Source of the DNA: Trichosphaerium sp. ATCC 40318
Taxonomy: Eukaryota > Protista > Tubulinea
Length of the DNA stretch: 64,000 nucleotides
Direction: 5' to 3'
Assembly: GCA_038496445.1 (NCBI GenBank)
Contig: JALMLS010000086.1
Location: 55,535 to 119,534 of the forward strand
Each line of letters opens with the position of its first letter. Position 1 is the first letter of the stretch. The translations under genes were made by a program, and so were the position numbers. This document shows positions 17,269 through 64,000 of this stretch, piece after piece. The notes beneath the pieces were generated by a model. It saw only the letters and a list, made by a program, of their open reading frames with translations. It made no database searches and was not told the DNA's origin.

Positions 17269-18045
17269 TCAATATTCAAAGTGGAATTTCCGTATGTCAA
17301 CAGCACCAGTGAGTGCCTCAACGTCTTTAGAATGTAGTGATTTAGATGTAAAACTGATGGTGTGCACTCCAGTCAACGCCTTGTAGCCCTCATCAGTTAT
17401 TGATAAACAACAACTCACGTCGATTTCGTGTACACCAGCAAGTGCCTTCAAGCCTTCATCTGTTACACTGGTGGCAACTAAACGGATGGTGTGTACACCA
17501 GACAATGCCTTCACACCTTCGTCTGTCACAGAAGTATAGGATAGATCTATCTCATGTACACCTTTCAACGCCTTTATGCCCTCATCAGTTATTGATTCAC
17601 AGTCACCCAAGTCGATCTTGTGTACACCAGCAAGTGCCTTCAAACCTTCATCTGTTACATTTGTTTTGTTCAACCGAATCTCGTGCACACCTGCCAATGC
17701 CTTAATACCCTCATCTGTTATTACTTTGCAAGCTCGAACGCTGATCTTATGTACACCTGCCAGCGCTTTAATACCCTCATCTGATATTTCGGGAAAATTC
17801 CTGAAGTCGATGACTGTATTCGCTAGTAATGGACTACAACACAGATTCTTCGCCTCGCTTTCACTTTCTATAAAGATACGAATAACACCAATGTGTTTGT
17901 TAACAATTTCTCGGAACCAACGGCATGTTCGGGCGGGACGGAGCGTATACGTCCTCTGTTTGAGAATCTGCACTATTACTTCAACTGGCAGTTCAGTAAT
18001 GTTGCCTATGCCCTCATTCGCGTATATTGTGTCTTTTTCTTCCAT
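17269..18045 (-). CDS. Intronless F-box + short leucine-rich-repeat protein (258 aa)
   Basis: ITELPVEVIVQIL...RTCRWFREIV F-box, then seven 21-22 aa repeats GVHxIxLxxxx(I/V)TDEGxKALx. Confidence 0.9.
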   Translation of the reverse strand: MEEKDTIYANEGIGNITELPVEVIVQILKQRTYTLRPARTCRWFREIVNKHIGVIRIFIESESEAKNLCCSPLLANTVIDFRNFPEISDEGIKALAGVHKISVRACKVITDEGIKALAGVHEIRLNKTNVTDEGLKALAGVHKIDLGDCESITDEGIKALKGVHEIDLSYTSVTDEGVKALSGVHTIRLVATSVTDEGLKALAGVHEIDVSCCLSITDEGYKALTGVHTISFTSKSLHSKDVEALTGAVDIRKFHFEY

Positions 18046-18807
18046 TTTGTTTCAATAATTACTCTAAACGCTTCGCACGTTAGTTTTCTTAGGAATGAAC
18101 GTAAAGTACTTAACCCGAACACTTACAATAGAGTACGGCCTATTTTAATAGACGTTTTGCAAAGTCAAGGTAATTAAACAATCACAAAATGTGCACAACA
18201 TTCATGCCGTGCCAAAAATCTTTATATGTCCAACCCAATACAACAAGAACAATCTGGTTAAACTAAAGTAAACCAACGCATTGGATGAAGAGAAGCAAGA
18301 GAAACAACAGTTCACCCACGTACATCAAGACAACTGAAGATGCATTACATGTTACCAATCTGAATTCGTTTTTATACTCGTAACCGATGAAGCTTTGTTC
18401 TCACTTCTAAGCTTGGGCGAACCGCTACAAATTAGAACAAACATGTGCCTGCCCTTGTTATTTTCCTGTGTTGTGCAATCATCTGTGGTAAACAAAAGTT
18501 GCTTTCTTTGGTTTTTTTGCAATACACTACAATCACCTTCATGAAACGCTATTTCACCTTTAACTTTATATGGTACAAGGTTTATTCCAGTACGTTTCAA
18601 GCCCTAGTACTGCCCTAAGGTTCTTCAATCAACTCAGGTTATACGAAGTGTTGTGATAATAAGCAGTTGGTGCAACACAAGTAGAATATAGACACAAAGG
18701 ATACTACGATCTAACACAGGGAACCGCTTGATCGAGAGATACTTTATAGGAATAGTACATACTTTATTTACTCAAATATTTACAAGCCTTCCGATGGCGG
18801 GGTAGTA

Positions 18808-31912: not shown

Positions 31913-32583
31913 AAGCACAGCCACACGAGATCAACAATAAATAGAGATAATAAAATGAATGATGCTTTTTTTTTTATCTGTTTTTTTTTCCGTGCCTTTT
32001 ATTTCGTTTTCCAGTCTGCTTCACCACTCTCTTGTAGACCTACTTGGTTTATTAGGTCACCGTTGAGAGACATATTCACACCAATGACTTAGTGTTTCCC
32101 AGCGAGTAAAAACGTGTTTGTGTTCATGAATTCGTTGAATTACCGTATTTAAGGTGTGCTTTGATATTCCCCTTATGGTTGGATCTTATTGGCGGTGCTC
32201 AAGGTACGGGAAAGAGGAGCTAATTAATATTTTGAGAATATGAGTGATTCATGCGTGACACCTTGTGGCGTCATAGCCACGTTTTTATAATACCAGTGGT
32301 CCCAGAACTATCCTTGAAGCAATATGGAAGGTTTTGTAACTATTGTAGTTTTTGATTGGTTATTGGAGGTTCAGGAAATCTTCGGAGACTTTCGGTCACA
32401 CCACACGCTATAGCTATGACCCATTGGTCGATTTATTGGCAATAGACGTCGTGAACTTTTCGTGTATGACGCAATATTTGTCTCAAGAAAATCACGTGAA
32501 AAGGCAAGGTGATCCTTACAGTCATAAACATCAACAACCTACACAATCAACAACAACTCCACTAGAACAAACAAACCAACAAC

Positions 32584-33117
32584 ATGGGTAAATCTAAACT
32601 TGCAATCGAAACTCAACTTCTTGAACTTGCCAAAGCCGAATACAAAAAGATGAGCGATAAACAAAAAGAAAAGCACTCTAAACCTAAAAAATGCAGTGTC
32701 TCAAAGAACTTTGTCATAAAGATAAATAGAAAAAGGCGAGCAGAGGAGGACAATAAACATCAGGATACATATACTGCTTGTACTTGTTTGGCTGTATACG
32801 CAACAAAGACAACAACATATGTTATTGTCACGAATGATTTCTTCAAGAGTGGCGATGGGAACAAGCATGAAAGGCTGTTTGCTTATGCCAAGCAACAATC
32901 TTGGATCAAGAAGAACACTGAGGAATGGCAAGTCAGCGGATGGACAATCAGCACCAGCAATAGAAAGGCGTTCAAGTCTGTTTTTAACAATGCTATAAAT
33001 GCACGTCGTAGAAGCCCAAGAGCCTATATGAGTGTTTTTGAGCAAGAGGTGCTCGGTAATTGCTTTGGTAAAAACAGGACCGCAGAGGTACTGACGGATA
33101 CAAAGAAAATTCCTTAG
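32584..33117 (+). CDS. Intronless basic orphan protein (177 aa)
   Basis: Clean ATG-TAG ORF after an AC-rich 5' leader, with AATAAA downstream; K/R-rich; no recognisable domain. Confidence 0.7.
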   Translation: MGKSKLAIETQLLELAKAEYKKMSDKQKEKHSKPKKCSVSKNFVIKINRKRRAEEDNKHQDTYTACTCLAVYATKTTTYVIVTNDFFKSGDGNKHERLFAYAKQQSWIKKNTEEWQVSGWTISTSNRKAFKSVFNNAINARRRSPRAYMSVFEQEVLGNCFGKNRTAEVLTDTKKIP

Positions 33118-33361
33118 AACCAATAACGAAGACCACGTGTGCAATTTGTAGAAATAAAATAGTTTGAAATGACAAAGCAACTTGATCTATGATTTAGTGG
33201 TTTATTCCCACAGCAAGCAATCCGCCTAAACCTCAAAGGGCTGGCCGGTTTTCACGTGTTTATCAAAGACCTTAATTAGCCCTCTAATAATTCCTAATGC
33301 TGGTTTGTGTTGCGGTGTACATCGTATGTATTTACTTCCTAGGGACACTTATTGCTTTGTA

Positions 33362-35632
33362 CATGAACAAGCTACAAATTTACGTTAACCATGTAGAGTG
33401 AGTTTGTCCTGCGTGTACCCGACCATTCCGGCGTTAACTACTTGAAGGATATTACATAACAGGTACTCCGCAATCACTCCTATCCGCATTGGGCGTTACT
33501 CCAAGCATGTAAGAATAACTTAGTCTATTTTAGTCATTTGGTATTTCATTTCTTACAAACATGTTAAGAAAGACAATAGATGTTGCTGAGCGTGTACCAC
33601 CTCCTGGACGGCCCACACATTCCAGAAGAAGTCGTCTATTCTCCATTAAAAAGAGGAGAAGACATAGGTCGGCTAAATCAGTAGATAACAGACGTCGGAC
33701 GAGACAGAAGCAGACAGCAACGAGTATGAACCTGCTACTTGTTGGTACGTCTTTTTTTTTTTGGGTTGAAAAAAACACGGGCAAAAAAATCCTCCCCGTC
33801 GCTTCGCTATCACGTGCGCGTAAATACAAATTACTATTGAGTGAACAAAAAAACCTAGGAGCTGTGGGGTTTTTTTTTCTTTCACAAAAGCCTTTATTCA
33901 CCTTCTTTGCGTTGAGATGAAGGATGTCTTTGTGTTGTTAATTGAAATTCCGCTCAACTTCTAGGTCTTTTAAATTTTAAATTTCGTGTCTGACAGCCCC
34001 TATTTTTGTTAAACTAATTAAAACCTTTCTATTCTTTGTATTCTCAATATGTTTTAAGTGTTTTAATACTTTTTAGGAGATAGGTCTTCACTTGAAGAAA
34101 TGTTATTGGTCATGAAACGAACAGCACAACAACATGACAGGTCAAATAGAGCGATGGACACTTACCGTATTTTTATCCGCCAAACGTGCCTTCGCGAACT
34201 CAAAAGTTTCATTAATACTGCAACACAAAATATGGTACATGTGGAGTCCAAAAATCAGGCACGTGAGCTTAAGAAGACGCGTAATTTATGGTTAAAAACT
34301 AATACAATATTTGTGATTTGGAAAAAAAATCTCCTCCATTTGTTCTACTTCTTTCGTTAACTTCTAGCCCACAGGTTATCTCCCAGAAAGTATGCCGTTT
34401 GTCTTCTATGACCACATGGGATGGCGTTGTGAGTCATAACGTAGCTGCATTGTATGCAGACAAAGCGCTAAAAACAGTCGAAAATAAATTAACTTCCAAG
34501 CACAGAAACTCAGTAAAATAGTACGAAAAAACACTCTTCTCCAAAAAACGTGTTTGTTGTCTTCCACTGACGATCTTTTTTTTTTTTCAGTTGGCGTAAA
34601 AATATATCAAGAGTAGCAGATCCAAAATATCAACCAACAATACAAGACATTATTTTGTAAGTGGTAGTAGCGGTAAAAAAAATCCAACTTAAATTCAAAC
34701 GGTTTTTTTCTTTCTTTGTGGCTAGTTTGTGCGATTGATTTCTATTATTTATTAATGTCGTATATTCTAGGTCACGTTCTATTATCACAGGCATAGAAGA
34801 AGAGTATCTACAGTTCCCAAAAATATCATTCAAAACAGTTACTTTACTCGGAGATCAAGAAACAAGTGTAGATTTATCAAACCATTGTGAACGCTTTCAA
34901 GTTGTTGTTTACTGTGTAGACGTGAGCCAATTCGATAAGGTAATCTAGCGCCCTTACAGAAAAGTTTTGCGCCATCACGTGATTTTATCAAACTCAGAAA
35001 AACTTACTTATTCCCAACATAGAAAAATCGTGGGAAAAAAAAACAAGACTCACTTGGAAGAACATTGGATGATTTCAACAAGTGGTGTAACAGTATTGAA
35101 CATTGTAACACTCCTTTCATATTGCTCTTTACTGGTATAGAGTCATTCTCTGTAAAGCTCAGATCTGGTACTGATTTTGGAAAGTACTTTGAAGGCTACG
35201 AAGGTACACACCTACATTACATTACAAATACACATTTTTCTATGGTAACAAAAGATCTTCCTCTCGTAACATGTGATACTATCGTGTACTTGAGTGTTGT
35301 ACTTTATGGTTCCATTTATAGTGCAACCCTTGTTGGTAGAGCAGAAAGAGACAAGTTTTTTATTTGGTTTTTTTATTCCATACTAAGTTAATATTAAGGT
35401 GCTGCTGATGATGTTGAGAAGGCGTTAAAACATATCCGAGAACAATTTCGGGAACGTAATTATTCTTCACATCTTGTTTTACCTTTATTCGTACGCAACC
35501 ATTCTGAAGAAACAATTCAATCTATAATAGACGTACGTATCCAATTTAATGGATTTTTTTATGTTGCAAATTGCACGTGTTGTTAACACGTTTTATGTAA
35601 AGGCTATCCACGATTGTGCTCGTGATGATTGA
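33362..35632 (+). CDS. Highly divergent G-protein alpha-like protein with degenerate nucleotide-binding boxes (5' end uncertain)
   Basis: Colinear with G-alpha: NLLLVG, YRIFIRQTCLRELK, VAALYADKAL, VVVYCVDVSQFD, CNTPFILLF, FGKYFEGYEG, ALKHIREQFRERN; G1, G3 and G4 consensus lost. Confidence 0.7.
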
Positions 35633-50288: not shown

Positions 50289-52439
50289 ATGTCCAGGCGC
50301 CAAGGGGGTAAGAAAGGAGGAAAGCGCAAGGCATCTACGCCTACTGGGCCAAAAAAAAAGAATAAGAGAAATAACCGCAACCCAAAGCCTAAAAACGATA
50401 TGGAGGCCATAGAGAATCAAATGGAGGGTTTAAAATTTGAAGATGACTTCGAGGACCAGTTTATACAAGAGGTAGAGGTCGACGAAGACATGGACGTAGA
50501 TGATTTGTGGCAAGAGCAAAAGGACAAGAAGGAGGTTAGTGAGAAAACACTCGGATTTTTTTTCACATTTTTTCTGTACTTTCGTAGCACTTGTATTCGC
50601 GTGTGCATGCGCCTAAAAACGATATAAGCGGTGAAAGCGCCCGATTTACGCGTTACAGTTTTTTATTATTATTTTTTGACGTTTATTTTTTCTTAGGTCT
50701 TCATAAGCGGCAAAACAGAGCAAGGATCAAAGCTGGACTACGAAAATGACGCTTATGACGCCCTGCACCGCATGACAGTTGAATGGCCCATGCTCAGTTT
50801 TGATTTTCTGACTGACTCGCTCGGCCACAACAGAACCAAGGTACGCGTTTACAATTTTGTTAGCTGGTGAAGAAAATATTATGTGTATGATAATAGAGCC
50901 TTCTTTTTCAGCGTTTGTATTGCCTCCTAACACGTTTGTTTAGTATCCTCATACCGCATACCTCGTTGGTGGTACTCAATCAGACCATGTGCGTAACAAA
51001 ATCCTCTTCTTGAAGGCGTCAGAATTGAACAAGACGCGATTTGATGAGAAAGGTGAGCAAAAAAGAAAAAAGAAAAATCCTCGCTTTGAACGCTGCAGTA
51101 TATACAAAATTAGTGCTAACTGTAAGAACGAATTAGAAGAGGAAGATGATGACGAAGAAGACGATGATGATTTGGACGTCGTTGATGAAGAAGCGCAATT
51201 AAGCGCTCCTAGAACAATCATTGTCAATGGCGCTGTCAATCGTGTTAAGGTGCGTACTTGTATTATTCCTTACTACTGCCGTGTCTTATCTGCCTCTGTA
51301 GTCTATGCCTCAAAATCCTGGTGTCGTTGTTGCTCAGTTGTCACAAAAGCCTTATGTCCAATTGTTCAATGCAACTGAACTTGTCAAGGCCCTCAATGAG
51401 CCACCTACAAAGAAACTCAAGACTGTCAAGCCACTTATCCAGTTCAATGGACATCATAGTGAAGGTTATGCCCTTGACTGGAACAGAAAGAGCGCTGGAA
51501 GGTACGTAATTTTAGAGTTTTTGTTACACTTTTTTTTTCGTTTTCTGATTTTTGGATCAGACTTATCTCTGGCGGTGGTAAAGGCCTCATCTATGTTTGG
51601 AATTACAAGACTGGGTACTGGAACACCGATAGCACACCGTTTGTAGAGCACAATGGTCCTGTTGAGGATCTTCAATGGAGCCCAAAGGATCCTGAGGTAT
51701 GCGTTTTGATAATAAATTGACCTACTCTTTTCTATGAGCAAAGGTTGTCGTAATTGTTATTCAGGTTTTTGCCTCGTGTTCTTGCGATAAGACGATCAAA
51801 CTTTGGGATTGTCGTCAACCGCACAACAAGTCCGCCTCTTCCGTTCAAGCTCATGACTGTGACGTTAACGTTATTTCATGGAATCGTATTGTACCATTCT
51901 TGATGGTATCCGGTGGTGATGAAGGTGTTGTTAAACTATGGGATACACGTAAACTGTACGTTAAGTTATTTCTTGTTCTTTTGTCCACGTGTTCAGCATA
52001 ATGACCTTTTTTTTCTTGTAGTGGTGCTGGTGCAAAGATGGAATTTGCTTGGCATAGAGGACCAATTACATCTGTTGAATGGAGTCCTTTTGAGGACTCT
52101 GTACTCGCTGCAGCCTCAGAGGTAGTTGGTTTAATCTTTGGATTATTTCTATTCACATATTTATGCGTTTGGTAGGATAACTCCGTGTCTATTTGGGATT
52201 TGTCTGCTGAGCGTGATGAGGTTGAAGAAGACCAAAAAGATTTGGACAACAAGATTCCTGAGCAGCTGTTGTTTGTGCACCAAGGACAGACAGATATTAA
52301 AGAGATTCATTGGCACAGACAAATTGTTAACGTTCTTGGCAGTTCTGCTTTGGATGGTTTTCACTTTTTCAAACCTAGTAATCTTATTGACGCTGTTGAT
52401 ATGGAAAAACCTGTGGTACTGTTTTCAATAATTATTTGA
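50289..52439 (+). CDS. GRWD1: Glutamate-rich WD40 ribosome-assembly protein GRWD1/RRB1, multi-exon
   Basis: LDYENDAYDALHRMTVEWPMLSFD, acidic tract, GHHSEGYALDW, VEDLQWSP, FASCSCDKTIKLWD, AHDCDVNVISWN, IPEQLLFVHQGQTDIKEIHWH. Confidence 0.95.
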
Positions 52440-52941
52440 AGTGGTGTTAACCGAGGTGTAGGAGGAAACAAAGCAAAAGACAACTGGTGATGCAATGCAA
52501 GAAGAATAATGCAAATATCTTTGTTAAATTTTGACAATAACAAAGTAATAACCTTTAAATAACTTGTAAATAATGTATTGTAAACTCTTGTTGCTCCTAT
52601 TTGTTTTAGTTAATGTTGTTGTGTTTCATTGGCTAGGTTCAACAAAAGCAACATTGCAAGCTTGGCTAAAAGTAAAATTACTATGGGTGTTTATTTTTAC
52701 AATAACTATACACTATGTTTGCAATATTTTTTGTAAAAGAAAAATTGGCAAAATGTACTTTAATTTTTTGTGTTAAGTATTTAAGTACACAATGTAAGTA
52801 ATAAAAGGCCAATAAAAATGCTTATCAAAGTTGGTAATAAAATGGTATATCTTTACAATATATAAAATAAAACTTGTGGTTAATTAAGCTCAGTTGTAAT
52901 AAAGCAACTATAACTACTTTCAAAACCAAATTAAACTTATA

Positions 52942-53082
52942 AACCTAACCCTAACCTTAATCAAAAACAGGCACACCATAATCATTAGGGTTGTAAACCT
53001 AACCCTAGCCCTAAATCATAAGCTGCAATTACAAGATAAAACCCTAGCCCTAATAGGTTAAAATAACGATTAGGGTTAGGGA
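52942..53082. repeat. Interstitial telomere-like CCCTAA/CCCTAG tracts switching to TTAGGG across an inverted repeat
   Basis: aacctaaccctaacc (52942), aacctaaccctagccctaa (about 52996), ccctagccctaat...attagggttaggg (53042-53081). Confidence 0.85.
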
Positions 53083-53194
53083 CTATGTGATTTTTATTCG
53101 TTGAATATCGTCTTGTAAGGGCCATCGTGGGTAGGGTTAGGGACTATGTGATTTTTATTCGCCGAATATCGTCCTGTATGGGCCATTGCAGGTA
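53071..53194 (+). repeat. Two tandem units of about 61 bp, each starting TAGGGTTAGGG
   Basis: tagggttagggactatgtgatttttattcg...gggccat at 53071 and 53132. Confidence 0.9.
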
Positions 53195-53611
53195 GGTGCA
53201 GAAATGCCAAAGGCATTTTTGTGCTTGAATTAATATGGCTTCATCCTATACTATGCTGCATTAAATACACACATAAAATTATGCTAGAATTGTGTTGACA
53301 TTGTGTATTTTTTTCCTTACAAGTTTACAATTGACTACTATTGAGCTAGGGTTAGGGCTAGGGTTGAGTTGACATAACATTTTTTTTTTTTACAAGTTAC
53401 ATTACTGATAATTATTTTATCCAAGGGCCATCACAGGTAGGTGTGAAAATGTTAAAGACATTTTCATATTAGAATCAATCAATAATTTCATTTTATGCTA
53501 TATTGTATTAAAACCATGCATAAAATTACATTAGAGTTGTGTTGACATTGTGTATTTTTTTCCTTACAAGTTTATAATTGACTACTATTGAGCTAGGGTT
53601 AGGACTAGGGT
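53180..53611 (+). repeat. Two diverged direct repeats of about 185 bp (53180-53364 and 53425-53611) ending in CTAGGGTTAGG(G/A)CTAGGGT
   Basis: Manual alignment; the 3' ~70 bp are nearly identical and the 5' part differs mainly by transitions. Confidence 0.9.
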
Positions 53612-54658
53612 ACTACTACAGAGGTGTCAAATGTTTTAGCAGATTCTGACTCTTGAGAATACCTTTTGAAAAAATAGAATACTTTTTGTTATGTAAAACA
53701 CCGCCGCGATGTTGGTAGAAGCAACTAGATTTGTGTCGGTGGCATACATGCTGAGATAGCCATTTTTGGGGCCTTTTTTTTGCTTTTGGCAGCCAAAATC
53801 CAGCTGATTTTCATTCGATAGAAGTTTGTATGGGGGCCTTGATTATAATAATGCCTATGTCAACCTTAAATATGCATTTGTATGTAATTTTAATCATAGA
53901 TTATGATGCAACAAACGATATTGCCATATGTGCTCACCATGTAAAGTTATTAATACATATGTTGTTTTCATCTTTTCTTACAACACGTTTTTGCATGTAG
54001 TCACGACCATGTGCATTATGAAAAGGGCGCTAATTTTGCGTGCGGTCGTAATATTTAGCGTATATCATGGTACAAACGTGTATTTTGGTGGGTGGCATAT
54101 ATGCGATTCAAAATTGGCGAATTGTGAAAATTGAAAATATTTTTTTGATTTTGGATGCTCACCACTATACCCCAAGATACTTTTTGTCCCAAAATTCATA
54201 TTGCCCAATTTAGATTTATGCATGAAAGTATGGCAAGCAAGATGATATAAGAATTTTTTACCTACATGCCATAATAGATTTTTGGAATTTTTTGGGATTT
54301 GGCCTGAAATATGTTGGCTATTTTTACTTATGGCGGTAGCTGTATGGCATAGCCCTAATTTAGGCCAATTTTGCAAGCTAATCCCAAATCTTCGTGTGAT
54401 TTCAAAAATATAAAATATATATTGTTCGGCGAAATAATTGGATTTGCAGGCATTGATACTTGGTTGCTAAGAAATGCCAAAAATGCTGATTTTTTCAACA
54501 TGTTCTCCAACCCCCCCTTGCTCCTCCGCTATACCATATGCCTTGTTATATGCTTACCACATGATTATTAAGCCATATTTACATGGTAATAAAACTCACA
54601 ATGTGATTCAGCATAGTGATAGAAATTAAATATTTTTTGCCATTTTATGACTTACCCA

Positions 54659-54700
54659 TTAGGGTTGGATTGATTACTAGGGTTAGGGTTAGGGTTTAGG
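54659..54700 (+). repeat. Interstitial (TTAGGG)n tract at the right edge of the island
   Basis: ttagggtt...ctagggttagggttagggtttagg. Confidence 0.9.
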
Positions 54701-54777
54701 AGTATGTACCAACCGTATTTTTTTGTACACTACTCTACCCTGTTGTAAAAATTTTTTCGATTTTTTTGGCTTTTTTT

Positions 54778-55616
54778 CTATGTTTTTGCACGTTTTTTTT
54801 GATCGTCCTTAAAGCTTCCATTTGTCGTTACGATATGTCCAACTGTGCTAGGTACATCGTCCCCTTTCCAGGTATGTTAGGTTAAAATTACTTTACATGG
54901 TACTTGCCTATGCGCTCGTCGGTTTTGGTGAAAGTAGAATAGTCATACTGTGCTTGTATTTCATCATCTTGTGTTTGAGTCTGTACAATCTCAGCTTTTT
55001 TTACCCGTTTGTTGTGTCCTCTGCCACGTTTTTTACCACATGATCTAGGCGTTGTTGGCATCTTACTGATTATTTTGTTATAGGCCTACGCTAGTAGTCG
55101 CTGAAGACTATCATCGTCGTCATCTGTTGTAGCTGAAAGCCGTTCTGTGTCATGGATTATTTTGCGTTTTTGGCCAACGTCACTTGTTTGACCTATGCGC
55201 CCTTCTTGCGGTTGCTGCCGTTGCTCTGCTGTATCTTTTTGTTTGACACGCAGATTTTGCTTGAATTCTTCTATTACATCTCTTTGACGCTTAGGCACTA
55301 ACATAGGAAGCGATATTAACGGTTTTTGCGTGTGTTCCTGTTAAAAGGTGAAACTAAGCATGAATAAGCTACTCACTGTCTTGGTAATCGTTGTTTGACG
55401 CTCCTCAAATGATCCGTAGCTACAACTCTTCATTTGCCATCTTACAGCACATTTATGAATAAACAAGCGAAACATGGCATTTAGAGGAGGGAAAACTAAG
55501 TTTGATGCGCTTGAAGAAACAAACAAAGCCATTTCATTGTCCGTTGTAATCAGAAATCTGCTAAAGTACTCAGATTTAACACCGTTGAGTACGGTCGCAT
55601 CGGTAGTTAACTCCAT
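54778..55616 (-). CDS. Hypothetical basic/low-complexity protein with an in-frame TAG at 55086-55088 (possible pseudogene)
   Basis: MELTTDATVLNG... spliced to EHTQKPLISLPMLVPKRQ...LQRLLA*AYNKIISKMPTTPRSCGKKRGRG; the frame stays open after the TAG and splices to a plausible last exon ending KKRAKT*. Confidence 0.5.
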
Positions 55617-55711
55617 TTCGTTTTGTGGCAAAAGCTGAAAAAGTTGAAATTTCTGTTTCAGAGCAAATACAACTTCTCCTGAAAGCTACGGGTCCTTAAA
55701 AATCGCGTAAA

Positions 55712-58700
55712 ATGCGCTTGCTGAAGCTTCTCCCGTGCTTTATTGTGGCTGTCTTACTTATTACAGGCAAGTATTCGTCCACTCTGGGTTACGAACTGTC
55801 TTACGTGTTTTAGCGGCCCATGCATCCCTTTTCCAGGCTGCTGATACATCCCTTAAAATATGCACCAAACCCGTAGTGTACAATAGCTATCTAGTAGTGG
55901 CAGCGTTATTAATCCTTATAGATACAATAACAAAGTAGTTTGTTCTGCGCAAAAAGTAAATCCAAACGCGGCATTGTGGGACTTTGATCTTACAGCTGGC
56001 AACGAATTAAACGCTGTAACTTTTGATTCAAAAGTAGAGTGGTACAAAAGAGCTTTTTTCTAAAACAAAAAAGAACAAAGCCAAGAAAAGTATCTAATTC
56101 CTCATAGGAAAGGCAAGCTGTATTTTCACGAGCCACCTCCACCAGTTTGTGGTACCACACCTGCTACTGTGTTTAACGTTGATACCTCTGGGAGTACGTT
56201 TAGAACCTTACTACCTTTCAACTAAAAAAGGAGTACTCACATTAAAAAAAAAAACCACCAAATGACACCCTTGTTATTATAGCTGTAACGACGGATGTTG
56301 CAAATTCTCTCGATGCTATTTTTGAAATGGTTGAGCTTAACAACGCTCTGTACTTAAGTGCAAGATTTCAGCTTACTGAATGCAGAAATGAAATTTGGAG
56401 GCTAAATGACGCAGGCTTATTTGATGGACCATGGGCTGTGGTTAATAACAACGGTAAGTTTTGTTATAACAGTTTATTTATACATTACTATACACTACAA
56501 TAGCGCGTTGTGTTCGTTGAAATGCTAATACTTACATTCATAGTGGCGGCTGGAATTAAAAACTTTGTTGTATTCCAAGACAACCTATTTTTTCAACAAA
56601 TTGTTGATGATACGACTTGGGGTGGCTTCTTAGGAGAGGAATTAGTCCAAATGAGCCCTGGGGATCCTGATCCTTTTGTTCAGAACGTATTTGGTACGTC
56701 GACATATTGGTGTAGGCTACAAGCGTTAATTTATTTTTGTAGATATTAATTCTGGTCCAGCCGGAAGTCGGCCATTCAACTTTGTACCAGTAAATTCCAG
56801 GCTGTATTTTATGGGATTTTTGGGCTCTTCACCACATATGTTTTTTTTTGAGGGGGATAATTATCAGACAGTACTTGAAATACAAGCAGGTAAGTGCAAT
56901 TTTTAAAGTTGTTTATTTGCAATTTATTTTGCTTACAATTCCCAAACCAGATTCTGTGGAATCTGAGATGGTTCTTGATCCTACGAAGACTTTATTATTT
57001 TTTATTGCTCTTCAGCAACCCAGTGGTAATAACCTTGTTTATGTTCTTGATACAAGTGGTACTCCTGTAAGGCTCACGCTTTGTTGAACTTTTTTTTCTT
57101 CTTTTTTTCCATTAAACGCTAGATACTAATTAACGCTTTTTTAAGTTCATTACAGTATTAAGAGTAAAGGATAATACAAACTACGTTGCACATACTATTA
57201 CTAATATAGTGAGTACTCCTGGCTCAGAAAGAACTTATTTCGTACGTCATACTTGAGTTCCTTTCAAATCACTTAACTATAAACCTAGTGTCTGGAAGAT
57301 TTAGATGATAATAAATACTATCTGTATTACTACGATTTCTCATCTGACCTCAAAATTGATCGTGTTACACCATTTGTGGAGCCACCAGTTTCGGCTATTG
57401 AATATCAGAGTAAGAGTATTATTAATGAGATTGCGTTTGTTGATGTAGTAATTTTAGGTCTAATATTGTACAGTGTAACAGACCAACCAGGTGTAGACCC
57501 AGTTTTTTGGGTATTTGATCCATTTGATACTCTCCCACCTACAGCCGCACCAACGACGTTGCCACCAACTACGCTGGCACCCACTACGCTACCGCCCACA
57601 ACACTACCACCAACAACGCTGCCACCAACAACACTGCCACCTACAACGCTGCCACCTACAACACTGCCACCAACAACGTTGCCACCTACAACACTGCCAC
57701 CAACAACACTGCCACCTACAACGCTGCCACCTACAACGCTGCCACCTACAACGTTGCCACCTACAACACTGCCGCCAACAACGCTGCCACCTACAACCCT
57801 ACCACCAACTACTTCACCTCCAACGCTCCCTCCAACAACTATACCTACAACAGCGACTCCAACCACTCTCCCACCTACAACAGATGCTCCAACAACGGCA
57901 GCACCTACGACAGTTGCGCCAACTACCCAGTCACCTACCACAGAGCCACCAACGACTCGACCTCCCACAACTGTACCACCTACAACAGCGGCGCCATCCA
58001 CGCTGCCACCCACCACAGAACCTCCGACAGAGGTACCAACATCGCCCCCAATGGAGGCACCTACACCGGGAGGGCAAGCTTCATTTGCAGCAGTATGTCC
58101 AATAGATCCTAGTTGGGATGAAGGCAATTGTTCAGTTACTTGCCAACCATTAGAATCGTAAGCACATCGCATATTTGCATATTTTATTTATACATTGTTA
58201 AGGTGTACTGTTCAACAACAACAAGTTGTCGTAGAATCAGAATTATCCCTGAGTTCTACTATTGTCATAGAAGGTAATCTAGTATTCCGCGGAGGTTTCA
58301 TAAAGATTGAATTCGATGCAGACGATGACGACTTTACTGCTGAAACAAAACGGCAACAAACTAATACTGTTGCGCCTATTCAAACCCTCGATAGAGGGTA
58401 CGCTATAGTCACAGGATGTATTGTTCCTGGCACTGTACGTTACATCATAAACCTCCATCTGTTTAAGTAGAATGTCTGATGTTTGACGTAGGGTGGTTTT
58501 GATGTTGATGCAAGTGAAGAAGAGTTAGCATCAAGAAAAGTAGTACATTTAGCAGAATTTAAAGACAAGGGTTGTCCTCCACTAGAAACAGAAAATATTG
58601 CTGTAACCATCAATAATCTACCTGATAGCAGATCCTCAAATCTATTTGAAGAACGTACGAAGATCATAGAACAATATATTTTTTTTGAAGATAAAAACTA

Positions 58701-58873
58701 ATCATTTCAAATCAGGTGGAAGGGTTTTTGTGGTATTGTCTGAAAAGAAGGAGGAAACTAAAGAAAATGAAATCCCGTTATGGGCTTTTATTCTTATTGG
58801 TGCTTTAGGTTGCATTATACTATTTGCAATCATTGTAGGTATAATTATATACTTGCGTAAGAAAAACGATTGA
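55712..58873 (+). CDS. Type I surface protein: signal peptide, ELWxxDGT-like beta-propeller repeats, (TTLPP)n mucin stalk, Cys-containing domain, C-terminal TM
   Basis: MRLLKLLPCFIVAVLLIT; MVELNNALYLSA...NEIWRLND; DINSGPAGSRPFNFVPVNSRLYF; TM IPLWAFILIGALGCIILFAIIVGIIIYL followed by RKKND*. Confidence 0.85.
57553..57807 (+). repeat. 15-bp coding minisatellite, 17 units encoding TTLPP
   Basis: ACAAC(A/G)(C/T)TGCCACC(A/T) units in tandem. Confidence 0.95.
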
Positions 58874-59315
58874 AGAGAAATTCCAAAATGTGTTTTAAGG
58901 CGTGTTAAGTACCAGTACGTCAAAAATCGTTTTTATAAACAAAGAGAAATACTGTACCTATGTACCCCAATTTTAAAAGTGCAATGTAAAATAAATTAAA
59001 ACTAAGTTCAGAAAATATAACGCTTCGGTTTTTTTCAAATTGGGTTTCTGATGTGTGATCTATCTTTGTCTTGTTTTTTCTTTTTGTTTTTAGTAGTTTT
59101 GAGGTAGACTGCATCACAAATTGGAAGCATTTGTGGAAATTTAAGGGAGACAATTTCTTACTACGATGCTTCACACTTTATATTTAGCTAGTTAGTCCAT
59201 CGCCGGGGCGTTAGCGAGTAGGTACAATATAGTTATACTATTCAGAGTTTCCTTTTTAGGTTGCTTTGAAACGCGGTACTACACTAAATACAACAGGAGG
59301 CTCAAAAACGTAATT

Positions 59316-60800
59316 ATGGGCGGCGTAATTGGTGTTTGTGGACCAACGAATGTAAGGACGCCAGAATCGAAGGCAATAGACGCTCAGCTAAAGAAAGACA
59401 ACAAGCTACATAATACTACTAGTAGGGTTCTAGTACTGGGCGCTGCAGGCTCTGGAAAGTCTACAATTATAAAGCAAGTTGTTTCTATGCACGGCGGTTT
59501 CTCACAATCAGATGTGGGGACATACAAGGATATAATACGTACCAATATTGTTGCGGGGTTCAAACGATTACTGGCAGAAGCAAAAAAGATGGAGTTAAAA
59601 GTAGTTCATAAACGAAAGGAAGCTATGGTAGCAGTTCTTGATGCAAAATTGTATGGTACGCATAATTATTCCGCTTTGGTTTTCAAAAGGCGTTTTGATC
59701 ATAGATTGGGTGTTTATGATATATGGCTTGCTCCGCTATTATACCGCTCGCTGTAGATACACATCGCACAGCGAAGATCTTTTTTGATCGCTCTACAAGT
59801 TTTGTTTAATTGGTTTTTCGCAAATCGAATTGAAACAAGTTTAAATTGTTTGTGATTGATTTAAGAGCGTAGGTGTTCTGTAGTTTTAATGTTTTATTGT
59901 AGGCGGTTTGACAGAAACAGATATTCGCTCGTGCAAAGCATTGTGGGAGGATCCAGTTATAAATAGAGTATTTCAAGCTTGTAGAGCTCAGAGCTTAGAA
60001 ACTCAGAACTTACAGTACTTTTTGGACACCGTTATCGATAAAATGCTTTCTGACTATGCTGCATGGACACCAAATGATGAAGATATTGTGAGAGCGCGTC
60101 AAAGAACAAGTGGTATCAATACTACCGGGTTTAAACATATTGGTCGGTATTGGTTAATGGTTGATGTTGGAGGTCAGAAAAACGAGCGTAGAAAGTGGAT
60201 TCACGCGTACGTTGTTTCTTTTGACGGATAATTTTTTTGAACTTTCTTTCGAGAGTCACCCAAACCCTGATCCTTACGCAGTAGTGGGTTAAAATGGCGT
60301 ATAGCATATTGTTTTAATCAACCTTTTTTGCGTTAATCGCTTGTTTTGGAATGCTGTCTAAAAACTCTTTTCTCAGGTTCGAAAATACGCATACGATCAT
60401 GTTTACAACCGCTACAAACGAATGGAATATCCCTTGTGATGAAGTTGCCGGAAATACAAAAATGGCGACTTCAATTCAGATTTGGGACGAAAACATCAAC
60501 TCGCACTATCTTCAAGACGCTGTTGTAGTACTATTCTTAAATAAGATAGATCTATTGGAACAAACACTTAAAAAAGGGAAATTCAAAGAGACCTATCCAG
60601 ACTTTGAAGGCGAGCAGACTATGAAGACTGTGCTTGAGTACATAAAAAACAAATATCTTGAACTTGTATTGCCTGCAAGAGGAGAAAAGCGGGAAGTTAT
60701 TGTTCATAATGTAAGCGCTATCAACAAGTCACAGATTATCAGTGTGTTGCATGAAGTACTATACGCTGTACTTAATTCTTGTGGTGGACTTTTATTGTAG
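59316..60800 (+). CDS. Heterotrimeric G-protein alpha subunit, multi-exon
   Basis: N-terminal MG (myristoylation-type); LVLGAAGSGKST (G1), RARQRTSG (G2), DVGGQKNERRKWIH (G3), LFLNKID (G4), VSAI (G5). Confidence 0.95.
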
Positions 60801-61420
60801 CAAAACTGCTCCAAAGTCTACCGAAAAACAACTTCCAAAAGGAAGAAAGTCTTGTACAATAAAAACTGTATCTTAGCAACAAATTCATGGTTGTTGACTA
60901 TCGGGCAAAAAAGATAGCGCTACTTCTTTATTTGGTAGTATTCAGGTGAATGTTTCTCTAGCCTTCGGACTAGATAGATAAGCAAAAACTGGAATAACAG
61001 ATATTTGAAAAAAAAAGACACCACACGACACAATTAGTTTAGGCCTGTTACAAAACTGGTTCAATAACGCCTCTAAGTGAGTTTTGTTGTATCTTATCAA
61101 GTGACACCTGTGTATCTTGACCGTGCCAAACTTTGTAGGCAAGACATTCGTGCAAGGAAACTGTTCTAACCACAACATGTACTAACTGTTTTTAAATCAA
61201 ATACCCATCGACTATGCAGCCTCTTTAGTAATGTCAGGACAATTTCGTAGTACAACACGTTTTAGATTTTAAGTTTCTAGCTATCATTTGTTTTTCAGGA
61301 AATTGTACACTTGTACTATCCTTTTGGACAGAGAATAAGCAAATTCTTGCTGTGTTTATTCTATAATTACTTGACATTGCTTGTTGCTACTCCTATTCAC
61401 GTACCTTCCACTCTACAAAA

Positions 61421-62056
61421 TTATACTATGAATAGCTCACCGCCCTGAGTCCACTTCTTGAACACTCCTCTAGGTTTTCCATTGATAAAATTTGACACTC
61501 CAAGTAATTGTCCATTTTTATACCACTCCTTCTTCTCTCCGTGTATCTCGCCATTAATATATTGACACTGCTCCCATAATTGACCATTAGCGTGCCACAT
61601 TGTGTAGTCTCCTTCAAGCTCGCCATTAGAGTATTGACATTGCTTCTGCAATTTACCATTGCTATGCCACAGCTGATACTCTCCGTGTAGTTTATTGTTT
61701 TTGTAACTACACTTGATACTCAGTTTACCGTTTAAGAACCATCCCTTTTTCTCTCCTTCTTTCTTGCCATTGACAAGTTGATACTGCTCAAGCAATTTAC
61801 CATTAGTAAACCACTTCTTGCAGTCACCTTCAAGCGAACCATGTACAAAAGTATATTGTGTTTTTTCAAATATCAAAAATGCTTCTTCATATTTCATCCA
61901 TTTCCCGTGCTTATTTAATTCACTATCAAACCTTGTAGTTGTTGCCGTTTGTTTAGATAAAATAGGCCATTTTTTGTACACTTCAAAGTCTAAGCGTATA
62001 ATTTCAAACTGTAGCTCTAATGGAAGCAACAATAAAGTGTAGCGAGCTTGTTCCAT
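61421..62056 (-). CDS. Intronless F-box-like + MORN_2 repeat protein (211 aa); paralogue of 9380-10303
   Basis: LLLPLELQFEIIRLDFEVYKKWPILSKQTATTTRFDSELNKHGKW followed by 24-aa MORN_2 repeats. Confidence 0.9.
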   Translation of the reverse strand: MEQARYTLLLLPLELQFEIIRLDFEVYKKWPILSKQTATTTRFDSELNKHGKWMKYEEAFLIFEKTQYTFVHGSLEGDCKKWFTNGKLLEQYQLVNGKKEGEKKGWFLNGKLSIKCSYKNNKLHGEYQLWHSNGKLQKQCQYSNGELEGDYTMWHANGQLWEQCQYINGEIHGEKKEWYKNGQLLGVSNFINGKPRGVFKKWTQGGELFIV

Positions 62057-62350
62057 GTCACTTCCCTTGTGTACCTGATTGTTTTGAAGAAACTTGAAGA
62101 CTTTTCGAAAAAAAAGAGTTTTTCCTTGATTAAGGCACTTCTCATGCTGAAAGGCTCAACAAGACGTTATGGTAGAGGCACGTTAATGCGTGGTAGCTCG
62201 AATAGATACAGCTTTTTTCTGACAAAGCTTCATGTGTGACAGATGGAGGTTAAAGCGCTTGGCAAGAGCGTTCAGAACTTGGCAAGAAAACAGGTCATTT
62301 AGAGACGTTTGAATCATCTGATGTTTTATTAAATCATGATCACAATTGAT

Positions 62351-64000
62351 TTAATTTTGCTGTTCGGCGTCTTTCTTCTGTGCAACCATGAGATCAGTAA
62401 CGAATTGGTTTGCAACACCAATTGTTTCATCAATATGCTGTTCAGTTACTGGTACACCAGCAGTGAATGCAAGAGATTGTGCTAGCCTGATTGTAGTACG
62501 GATTTGACGTCCGTTAATCTCATATTTGGCAAGGCGTTTAATGTCAAGTCCTTTAATGCTTGCTGTTTCTAATAGATTACCCCAAATCTTTTCACGTGCA
62601 GTTTCATCGAGGTTCTCGTATTTGAGGGCGACTGAAGAGTAAATCAGGGACTGAAAAAAAACAAGAGAAAGAACCTATTTTGCTTTTTTTGAAGAACAAA
62701 AAAAGGGAGCGTACCTGAAATACGTGAGTGGAAGGCTTCGTCGAATACTTTGACACGATTGGTTGTCAAGAAAAGTACACCTTGGTGATACTCAAGCAAA
62801 CGCAAGAAGATACCAACCTAAACAACAAGTAAGACATACGAACAAGAAAAAAAAGAAATAGTGAATCTGAAGAAAACCAAGATTATTGGCTGTGATTTTT
62901 TCCTTTTGTAAGATCTAAGAAACTTTACTTACCATAGCATTACGCATGATGGCATTCTCAGAACGCTTCTCAAGGAAGATATCTGCCTCATCTATAAGGA
63001 CGACAGCGTTCCAGATACTAGCCAATTCAAGAATTTGACGTAATTTCTCTTCGAGTTCCTTGGTGTTTGTACCAAGTTCACCAACACTAACAGAATACAA
63101 TGGCCTATGCAATAACTCTGCAATTGCCTCTGCAGTGAGGGTTTTACCTACACCTGGAGAACCATGGAGCAAGAAAATACAACCACCACCTTTTCCAGAG
63201 ATGATATCGGCAAACGACTAAACACAGATTTAGTGATTTGTAATGCAAGTTGGTGATATTTTTTGAAGAAAAAAATGGAAACTCTTTGCGTTCAGACGCG
63301 TGTGCAACGAACAAAATAAAGCGTTTGAGTTGCTGTTATGCACTGGTGCTGCTTTATGACGAAAAAAGCAAAATGAATACAGCACCCTACGTTCCCTGGT
63401 CCTCACGGACCCAAGTACTGGCAGGGCCATACCATGCTTATCTTCGCGGTTCGGAAAGAGACACGGAGTTTTCATGGTTGTATGGCCGTATCCAATTGTG
63501 AAGGAAAGATTTTTGAAACTGGTTTGGTCAAAAAAGTGCAAATAACCGAAAAATCAGGTTGTGACCACAAAAGCAACAAAAACCCAAAAAAAAAAGAGGT
63601 TGCAGAAGCGTATGCACTCTCCCGAGAGACATGAAGATTATGTGCGAAATGGTTCATGGGTACCTCGTGTGCGTTCTCTACTAGACTCTTGATCAATTGT
63701 TTCTTTTTTGGTGGGAAGACAAGCTTTTCGAAGGCTTTGTCGTCGTATTTAACAGGAAGCAAGTTCTCAACAACAATTTCACCCCATTTCTTGGCTGAAA
63801 AACTAAAACCACCAATGGTAGGCCAGGTCATGAACAAATGCTCCTCAGGAATGGACTAGAAGAGAAACATTTAGCGAAACAAATGAATGAACGAAAAAGC
63901 AAAAAAAATCAAAAAAAAATAAAAGTTTGTGAAGGAGTACGTACTGCCATTCTAGTACTCGAAGCAGGAGATGTAGAAAATGATCTATAATTTGGATTCA
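62351..64000 (-). CDS. AAA+ ATPase (fungal/protist GKG.G...LLHG.PGVGKT family); 5' part outside the window
   Basis: Walker A LHGSPGVGKTLTAE, Walker B VVLIDEADIFLE, FLRLLEYHQGVLFLTTNRV, FDEAFHSRI, NGRQIRT. Confidence 0.92.

Follow-up and report, generated by a model that had tools for sequence, protein, structure and literature searches.

Probable methylation-linked CpG decay in an old, silent repeat near a contig end of the amoeba Trichosphaerium sp. ATCC 40318

The repeat studied here lies in a 64-kb window of the genome of Trichosphaerium sp. ATCC 40318 (assembly GCA_038496445.1, contig JALMLS010000086.1, positions 55,535 to 119,534), which is the terminal part of a contig of 119.5 kb. The repeat stretch is found approximately 11 kb from the contig end and includes two related units, A (53180–53364) and B (53425–53611), which differ from each other almost only by transitions. 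Coordinates without a contig name are those of the window, and other contigs of the assembly are denoted by C and a number. An earlier note on this DNA had read the differences as the footprint of a repeat-targeted mutation or modification defence resembling fungal repeat-induced point mutation (RIP), with an unusual signature at both CpG and GpC. The question that the locus raises is whether the two units record such a hypermutation or a more gradual process. The analysis favours, at a probability of roughly two in three, methylation-linked CpG decay combined with AT-biased drift in an old and silent subtelomere-type repeat, with units that are mosaics of different ages. A footprint of CpG deamination was thus retained from the earlier proposal, while its GpC signature and its repeat-induced hypermutation were not.

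Comparison of units A and B

Units A and B and the sequences joined to them are as follows.

53071–53192, plus strand: two tandem 61-nt units, both opening with TAGGGTTAGGG, the second overlapping the head of unit A (Tandem Repeats Finder: period 61, 1.9 copies, 92% matches)
53180–53364, plus strand: unit A of a repeat of ~245 nt; 185 nt, 36.8% G+C, 0 CpG, 12 GpC, 3′ end CTAGGGTTAGGGCTAGGGT
53202–53218, plus strand: 7-bp inverted repeat AAATGCC-AAA-GGCATTT within unit A, read directly from the sequence; it supplies two of the GpC sites counted in the earlier note
53365–53424, plus strand: spacer of 60 nt between A and B, whose sequence (TTGACAT...T-run...ACAAGTT) reads like the 3′ part of the unit itself in diverged form
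53425–53611, plus strand: unit B, an AT-richer old paralogue of A; 187 nt, 29.9% G+C, 0 CpG, 4 GpC

A MAFFT alignment of 53170–53375 against 53415–53622, scored over 187 homologous columns, gave 30 transitions, 3 transversions and one 2-nt indel, with an identity of 81%. Ten of the transitions form five adjacent swaps between TG and CA (53187-8, 53199-200, 53220-1, 53270-1 and 53282-3), and in 17 of the remaining 20 unit A carries G or C where unit B carries A or T. The counts, the swaps and the polarity reported earlier were all reproduced by this alignment. The three copies of a motif on which the note had also relied were likewise found, reading CATCGTGG at 53123, CATTGCAG at 53184 and CATCACAG at 53429, and several paralogous copies at other genomic sites still carry, without change, the parent that it had deduced for them, CATCGCGG.

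The excess of transitions is not random, as the ratio of 30:3 differs from the 178:155 seen in a 4.2-kb duplicate of the window (p=1e-5); it also exceeds the total of 225:83 for the repeat family as a whole (p=0.03). The differences are unevenly placed, with all but two of them in the first ~115 nt of the unit. Of the non-CpG G/C sites, 18/36 were changed in this 5′ part against 1/26 in the last ~75 nt (p=7e-5). Changes of C>T and G>A are interleaved along the unit, with no strand-coherent run. The two 61-nt units differ from each other by 6 transitions and 1 transversion, and this unit was found at 20 genomic sites.

The counterpart of the inverted repeat in unit B (53447–53463) reads AAATGTT-AAA-GACATTT. 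Here a G>A change at 53458, private to this locus, restores pairing with a C>T change at 53452. It is a single instance and may be due to chance.

A dispersed family at contig ends

The A/B pair is a member of a dispersed family of repeats at contig ends and not a local duplication. Matches of the stretch to the genome, 21 in number, were reduced to 17 distinct unit-A sites, all of them at most ~31 kb from a contig end, and this also held on contigs of 0.15–1.25 Mb. At 13/17 of these sites the TTAGGG-like strand, in the orientation of a telomere G-strand, faces the nearer contig end. On contigs other than that of the window there are at least 13 A-type copies with identities of 83–96%. The spacer is kept together with unit A on C92, C512, C98 and C610 in matches of 245 nt. 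Contigs that stop within these repeats terminate in repeat sequence without telomere arrays, and (TTAGGG)6 was found nowhere in the 70-Mb assembly, in which the true telomere repeat and the chromosome ends are not assembled.

The composite of 61-nt unit, unit A, spacer and unit B recurs on C92 and C512. The B copies on these contigs are 95–96% identical to unit B of the window and only 81–83% identical to unit A. Among the 37 columns that differ between A and B, 26 are common to all three B copies, six are private to unit B of the window and five are private or minority states of unit A of the window. As 26/37 columns are common to the B copies on C92 and C512, the split between A and B predates the dispersal of the composite. 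A third and older unit, on C610, carries some of the B states. This succession of shared, partly shared and private states suggests a stepwise accumulation of changes and not one event at this locus.

CpG ancestry and context of the changes

If the swaps between TG and CA are decayed CpGs, the ancestral dinucleotide might survive in other copies. Four of the five swap positions were found to be CG in 1 to 11 paralogous copies, which show CATCGCGG, GTGCGG, GCCGAAG, TTTTCGTG, GGCGC and ACGTGC where the window copies have TG or CA. Some paralogous copies hold 6–8 CpGs, against none in A and B of the window.

The context of the changes was then determined over ~1.4 kb of alignments, which comprised module 2A (13 copies), module 3 (9 copies, 1.07 kb) and module 4 (16 copies) of the same island, described below, and the 61-nt unit (19 copies). 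Changes were polarised by the majority state of each column or from singletons only. The rates per site were as follows.

C>T at CpG: 0.70 by majority, 0.50 from singletons only
C>T at GpC (non-CpG): 0.246 by majority, 0.196 from singletons
C>T at other C/G: 0.234 by majority, 0.182 from singletons
A/T>G/C: 0.061 by majority, 0.032 from singletons

CpG is accordingly the sole context in which C>T is raised family-wide. Together with the surviving CG copies, this upholds the earlier interpretation of the swaps as CpGs deaminated on opposite strands. The 5′ neighbour had no effect on C>T at the 463 non-CpG C/G sites of the four modules (A 0.224, C 0.252, G 0.246, T 0.224; p=0.94). For the 3′ neighbour, G stood far above T and C, with A lowest (CpA 0.18). 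TCG (0.76) was not above CCG (0.77). CHG sites had a rate of 0.36 against 0.225 at CHH (p=0.064), and neither this contrast nor those for CpG-adjacent cytosines and for GCAT and TGC motifs was significant.

The composition of the island agrees with this spectrum. The observed/expected (o/e) ratio of CpG was 0.53 in the island and 0.87 in both flanking genes, and the ratio (CpA+TpG)/(ApC+GpT) was 1.34 compared to 1.05 for the window, with TpA/ApT at 0.94. The family thus shows a rise of C>T specific to CpG, copies in which the CG survives, and a depletion of CpG with TpG and CpA raised relative to neighbouring DNA, as is expected of methyl-CpG decay.

The joint signature at CpG and GpC did not hold up. 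The earlier note had proposed that the genomic copies be collected and a context spectrum calculated, and had set the lack of a GpC excess in larger alignments against its own proposal. In the alignments above C>T at GpC (0.246) was level with that at other non-CpG C/G sites (0.234), no 5′ base had an effect, and GpC was enriched in the island (o/e 1.53), the opposite of what is expected for a mutator that targets GpC.

Controls from low-copy duplications

Three low-copy duplicated sequences of the window served as internal controls.

54773–64000, plus strand: 9.2-kb low-copy duplication, 98.5% identical to C221:7129–16355 (minus strand), reaching the contig end
12588–16783, plus strand: 4.2-kb two-copy duplication, 89% identical to C43:230291–234552
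32059–33445: four-copy element, with 37 transitions and 22 transversions among singletons and non-CpG C>T at ~2 times T>C

The 9.2-kb duplicate contained 65 transitions and 49 transversions (ratio 1.33), with transitions per site of 0.036 at CpG, 0.016 at other C/G and 0.008 at GpC. The 4.2-kb duplicate had a ratio of 1.15 and corresponding values of 0.23 at CpG, 0.15 at GpC and 0.093 at other C/G. Taken together, the two duplicates gave 243:204 against 225:83 in the repeat family (p=2e-7). Decay toward AT is therefore faster in the silent island than in the other duplicated sequences; it affects every context, CpG the most. Since these long duplicates show no burst of transitions, duplication as such is no trigger; of all the arguments against a RIP-like sensor this is the strongest.

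Silence of the island and genes for cytosine methylation

The four public runs that were used are small contig sets with no methylation-type library among them; no RNA contig fell within 52700–54500, although the same runs cover both neighbouring genes. The open reading frame (ORF) lists of the island held nothing coding, and an Rfam search of 52000–57500 gave only a sub-threshold miRNA-like match and no hammerhead.

A search of the genome with the PF00145 profile detected two loci. One, at C7:~645.4–648 kb, is a gene with a BAH exon followed by methyltransferase exons that carry the motifs GGPPCQGFSG, ENV and QERLRVF (QxRxR). Its best relatives of solved structure are DNMT1 (E=7e-16), and judged by its sequence it is of DNMT1 type and apparently intact. 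At the other, C59:71478–71633, is a second C5-methyltransferase-like exon with ENV and QRR motifs, of a family class that is not assignable. Pfam searches of ten more exon-sized ORFs around it detected nothing, with no other recognisable domain within 4 kb, and it may represent an enzyme that has diverged or decayed. DNMT1-type sequences were the only ones detected with PF00145, with no clear DNMT3 sequence. SRA-domain genes were found at three or four loci, with SAD_SRA matches above the cut-off on C547, C42 and C91/C615. The only matches to the DNMT1-RFD domain were two borderline ones, both of them on contigs other than that of the C7 gene. A search for Tet_JBP found no match but was silent in every control genome too and is hence uninformative. 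The enzyme search suggested by the earlier note was thus productive on the side of methylation, with a DNMT1-type gene and SRA genes, and not on the side of deaminases, as no match to APOBEC_N was found in the genome.

Interpretation

The decay of CpG in the island is attributed to 5-methylcytosine on the grounds of the CpG-specific spectrum, the depletion of CpG, the silence of the island, the presence of DNMT1-type and SRA genes, and the precedent of other amoebae. From these we infer methylation of the island itself. Units A and B are old paralogues inside one composite module, copies of which later spread to further regions near chromosome ends. The ancestor of the two units would have been rich in CpG across the first ~115 nt, and most of the difference between A and B in that part would be CpG lost to TpG or CpA. 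The loss probably results from spontaneous deamination of 5-methylcytosine that the DNMT1-type enzyme of this genome would place on silent repeats. The remainder would be AT-biased drift of G:C>A:T, such as is found family-wide in every context. The more decayed state of unit B may reflect an older or less often recopied lineage. The last 75 nt, near-identical in A and B, may have had a more recent shared ancestor, through conversion or recombination, or may be conserved.

Several results weigh against this interpretation. Outside CpG, the ratio of transitions to transversions was 156:77 in the family against 46:43 in the 9.2-kb duplicate (p=0.014), and per site C>T was ~6 times as frequent as T>C in the family compared to ~2 times in the four-copy element. 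In view of this non-CpG excess, CpG methylation alone is insufficient. The CpG excess was only 2- to 4-fold in the family, and a smaller one (2.1- to 2.5-fold) was seen in the low-copy duplicates too; part of it may be independent of repeat targeting, and even of methylation. It should also be noted that a CpG no longer present in most copies escapes polarisation by majority rule. Finally, over the whole of the unit GpC sites had changed between A and B more often than other non-CpG sites (12/21 against 7/41, p=0.003, range 0.003–0.007).

Alternative explanations

The non-CpG excess could be accommodated by methylation of cytosine in all contexts, at CpG and more weakly elsewhere, with deamination everywhere and fastest at CpG. 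This would extend the favoured reading rather than replace it, and is considered possible though not probable. It would account for the excess of C>T over T>C outside CpG in the family (0.18–0.20 against 0.032; Fisher p~0.03 against the four-copy element, on raw counts), for a non-CpG transition to transversion ratio of 2.0 in the family against 1.07 in the 9.2-kb duplicate, and for the slight lead of CHG over CHH; the restriction to DNMT1-type sequences and the all-context methylation of Naegleria (PMC12344493) point in the same direction. The excess is modest, however, the controls are few and partly coding, and AT-biased mutation with an excess of G:C>A:T is common without methylation. It may tentatively be supposed that an amoeba apparently equipped with DNMT1-type enzymes only methylates its chromosome-end repeats at CpG and weakly at other cytosines, which would give a soft, RIP-like erosion with no duplication sensor. 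If so, repeats would be inactivated gradually, with C>T at ~6 times T>C in every context, as a mutational counterpart of the methylation seen in Naegleria. At the other extreme, methylation may have had no part, the island being neutral, non-transcribed DNA that drifts to AT with an intrinsic CpG effect, while the DNMT1-type enzyme acts elsewhere or nowhere. The small size of the CpG excess and its presence at ~2-fold in low-copy duplicates are compatible with this, as are eleven between-sample variants in neighbouring exons (10 transitions, one transversion), which do not suffice for a neutral spectrum but by which a high share of transitions is not confined to the repeats. This explanation is nevertheless judged unlikely, given a CpG o/e of the island well below that of both flanks, ratios of C>T to T>C and of transitions to transversions in the family above those of three internal controls, a DNMT1-type gene with intact catalytic motifs beside SRA readers, and the finding that, in the amoebae examined to date, methylation falls on the repeats (PMC12344493).

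Two explanations descend from the earlier note and are very improbable by comparison. A RIP-like defence, in which a RID/Masc1-type or deaminase system struck tandem A and B until they reached ~80% identity and the mutated composite then dispersed, would explain why the A/B ratio is above that of the family and why both copies have changed, as the swaps indicate. The A/B identity of 81% is close to the level below which RIP ceases in Neurospora, and the unclassified C5-methyltransferase fragment on C59 might be counted in favour. Such a defence would hardly have spared the 3′ 75 nt of the same unit, and neither the interleaving of C>T and G>A nor the lack of any dinucleotide preference other than CpG, with CpA the least mutable, is what RIP would leave. 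Neither RIP index indicates it, with TpA/ApT at 0.94 and the substrate index, at 1.34, raised and not lowered. The changes in B are shared partly with the C610 unit and partly with all B copies, and six are private, which argues for gradual accumulation; the genome gave no APOBEC_N match. The proposal of an event triggered by duplication does not survive the lack of an excess in the long duplicates, the untouched 3′ part, differences older than the dispersal, and the low mutability of CpA. The duplication trigger was rejected as largely refuted on the long duplicates. The least credible explanation is methylation or mutation of repeats specific to GpC, for instance by an M.CviPI-like enzyme of viral origin, alongside CpG methylation. 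The contrast of 12/21 and 7/41 speaks for it, as do three adjacent GC>AT doubles between A and B. The GpC sites lie almost wholly in the 5′ part of the unit, though, and within that divergent part the contrast fell to 11/17 against 7/19 (p=0.18). The clustering of changes at GpC described earlier is therefore nominal over the whole unit and lost within its 5′ part, and the unit looked GpC-biased because its GpC sites are concentrated in the divergent part of a mosaic. A 5′ G had no effect at the 463 sites (0.246 against 0.224–0.252), nor did singletons differ appreciably (0.196 against 0.182), GpC is enriched in the island, and it was the least mutable class in the 9.2-kb duplicate. The pattern had moreover been chosen post hoc from the same 35 differences, and two of its GpC sites belong to the inverted repeat with paired changes at 53452 and 53458. 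The GpC signature was dropped as it was not replicated in the larger alignments.

Layout of the island and neighbouring features

The repeat stretch as a whole (52930–54791) is a mosaic of ~1.9 kb that contains at least four repeat modules, with short telomere-like tracts at the joints, and is flanked on both sides by expressed and spliced genes. Apart from the units listed above, its parts and neighbours are as follows.

52930–53070, minus strand: module 1, a repeat block with CCCTAA-like tracts and a polarity opposite to the rest of the island; minus-strand telomere-like matches at 52943–53053; partial copies on C154, C1, C289 and C32
53606–54678, plus strand: module 3, a non-coding repeat of 1.07 kb, cut short here and capped by AGGGTTAGGGTTAGGGTTT; ~12 copies, identity 77–97%
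54678–54791, plus strand: module 4, which corresponds to the opening 114 nt of a longer element (at least 5.5 kb); at least 16 copies, identity 92–97%; elsewhere too it starts just after a TTAGGG-like tract
50695–52597, plus strand: left-flank gene, expressed and spliced, with spliced contigs and GT..AG introns in four runs; CpG o/e 0.87
54781–55376, minus strand: right-flank gene, expressed and spliced, with contigs that have CT..AC joints in runs X1 and X6

Copies of module 3 on C5, C23, C583 and C102 extend past the end of the window copy, and no ORF or Rfam family of note was found in this module. Two relatives of module 4, C308:31214–36500 and C154:23937–29260, are 95% alike across 5.3 kb, and the long element contains internal repeats of ~150 nt. 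A Pfam search of 20 ORFs of 90 aa or longer, taken from both strands of the 5.5-kb relative, returned weak low-complexity matches only and no reverse transcriptase.

The modules each start at a fixed element position right after a short TTAGGG-like tract and end variably at another such tract. The end points lie at 1073, 1049, 796, 524, 318 and 166 nt for module 3 and at 196, 135, 125 and 85 nt for unit A. The pattern was seen at 52930–54791 of the window and on C3, C23, C39, C92, C102, C170, C438, C441 and C614. This is how telomere-attaching elements would behave, or chromosome ends that erode and heal repeatedly. The 9.2-kb terminal duplication begins exactly at the cut of module 4, an arrangement that looks like the capture of distal sequence by an old chromosome end. 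In their near-end position, mostly end-facing orientation, fixed start and capped, variable end the modules resemble the telomere-attaching retroelements, namely the Athena and Coprina Penelope-like elements (PMC8557442) and HeT-A and TART of Drosophila (PMC5537684), as well as subtelomeric duplicons. Unlike these retroelements, neither the modules nor the 5.5-kb relative of module 4 yielded a reverse transcriptase, a hammerhead ribozyme or a Pfam domain, and no long TTAGGG array is assembled.

In the left-flank gene, the eleven differences between transcript contigs and the window mentioned above lie in 50759–52280, and two of them, T>C changes at 51890 and 52067, recur in every one of the four runs. 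Elsewhere in the window, an ORF-bearing stretch at 17355–18057 has ~100 genomic matches at 66–77%, often in tandem, and belongs to a large family in which a coding domain is repeated.

Comparison with known systems

The decay of methylated CpG in silenced repeats is textbook knowledge, and the present case fits this known kind.

In the transposons of vertebrates and of plants, and in those of Agaricomycotina and Ustilaginomycotina (PMC3318451), methyl-CpG decay in the presence of DNMT1 has the features described here: CpG>TpG/CpA as the sole context excess, a low CpG o/e with raised TpG and CpA, a gradual decay that proceeds independently in each copy, and an encoded DNMT1-type enzyme with SRA readers. 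For basidiomycete transposons a plain CpG excess was likewise ascribed to deamination of methylated cytosine and not to RIP (PMC3318451). The present case differs in that the CpG effect is modest (~3- to 4-fold and saturating) and is accompanied by a marked non-CpG excess of C>T, and in that methylation is here deduced from the footprint.

The comparable amoebae are Acanthamoeba castellanii, in which repressive 5-methylcytosine was measured at CpG on repeats and heterochromatin, and Naegleria gruberi, which carries it in all four dinucleotide contexts on repeats and has DNMT1 orthologues only (PMC12344493). These share with Trichosphaerium an amoeboid protist lifestyle, DNMT1-type enzymes and silent, repeat-rich, heterochromatin-like targets, and the pattern of Naegleria would also account for the all-context C>T seen here. 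That study reports methylomes, whereas the present evidence is a mutational footprint only. In Acanthamoeba, treatment with cytidine analogues was partly effective (PMC12344493). Fungal RIP, as in the RID system of Neurospora or the TpCpG-biased RIP-like changes of Pucciniomycotina (PMC3318451), is alike in the transition-dominated divergence of repeats and in the change of both copies. It is unlike the island in its dependence on duplication, its CpA or TpCpG preference, its strand-coherent runs and its indices; in the island the unit is partly untouched and change was stepwise.

The result would add one more protist whose silent repeats bear the mutational scar expected of cytosine methylation, which fits the view of repressive 5-methylcytosine on repeats as ancestral in eukaryotes. 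Claims of RIP outside fungi and of a signature at both CpG and GpC find no support at this locus. When just two copies within an old, mosaic repeat are compared, the result can resemble hypermutation; here the controls that decided the matter were the paralogues at other genomic sites and the long duplicates close by. For the organism itself, the structure of the modules, with their fixed start and telomere-like cap, may be the more interesting lead to how its chromosome ends are built.

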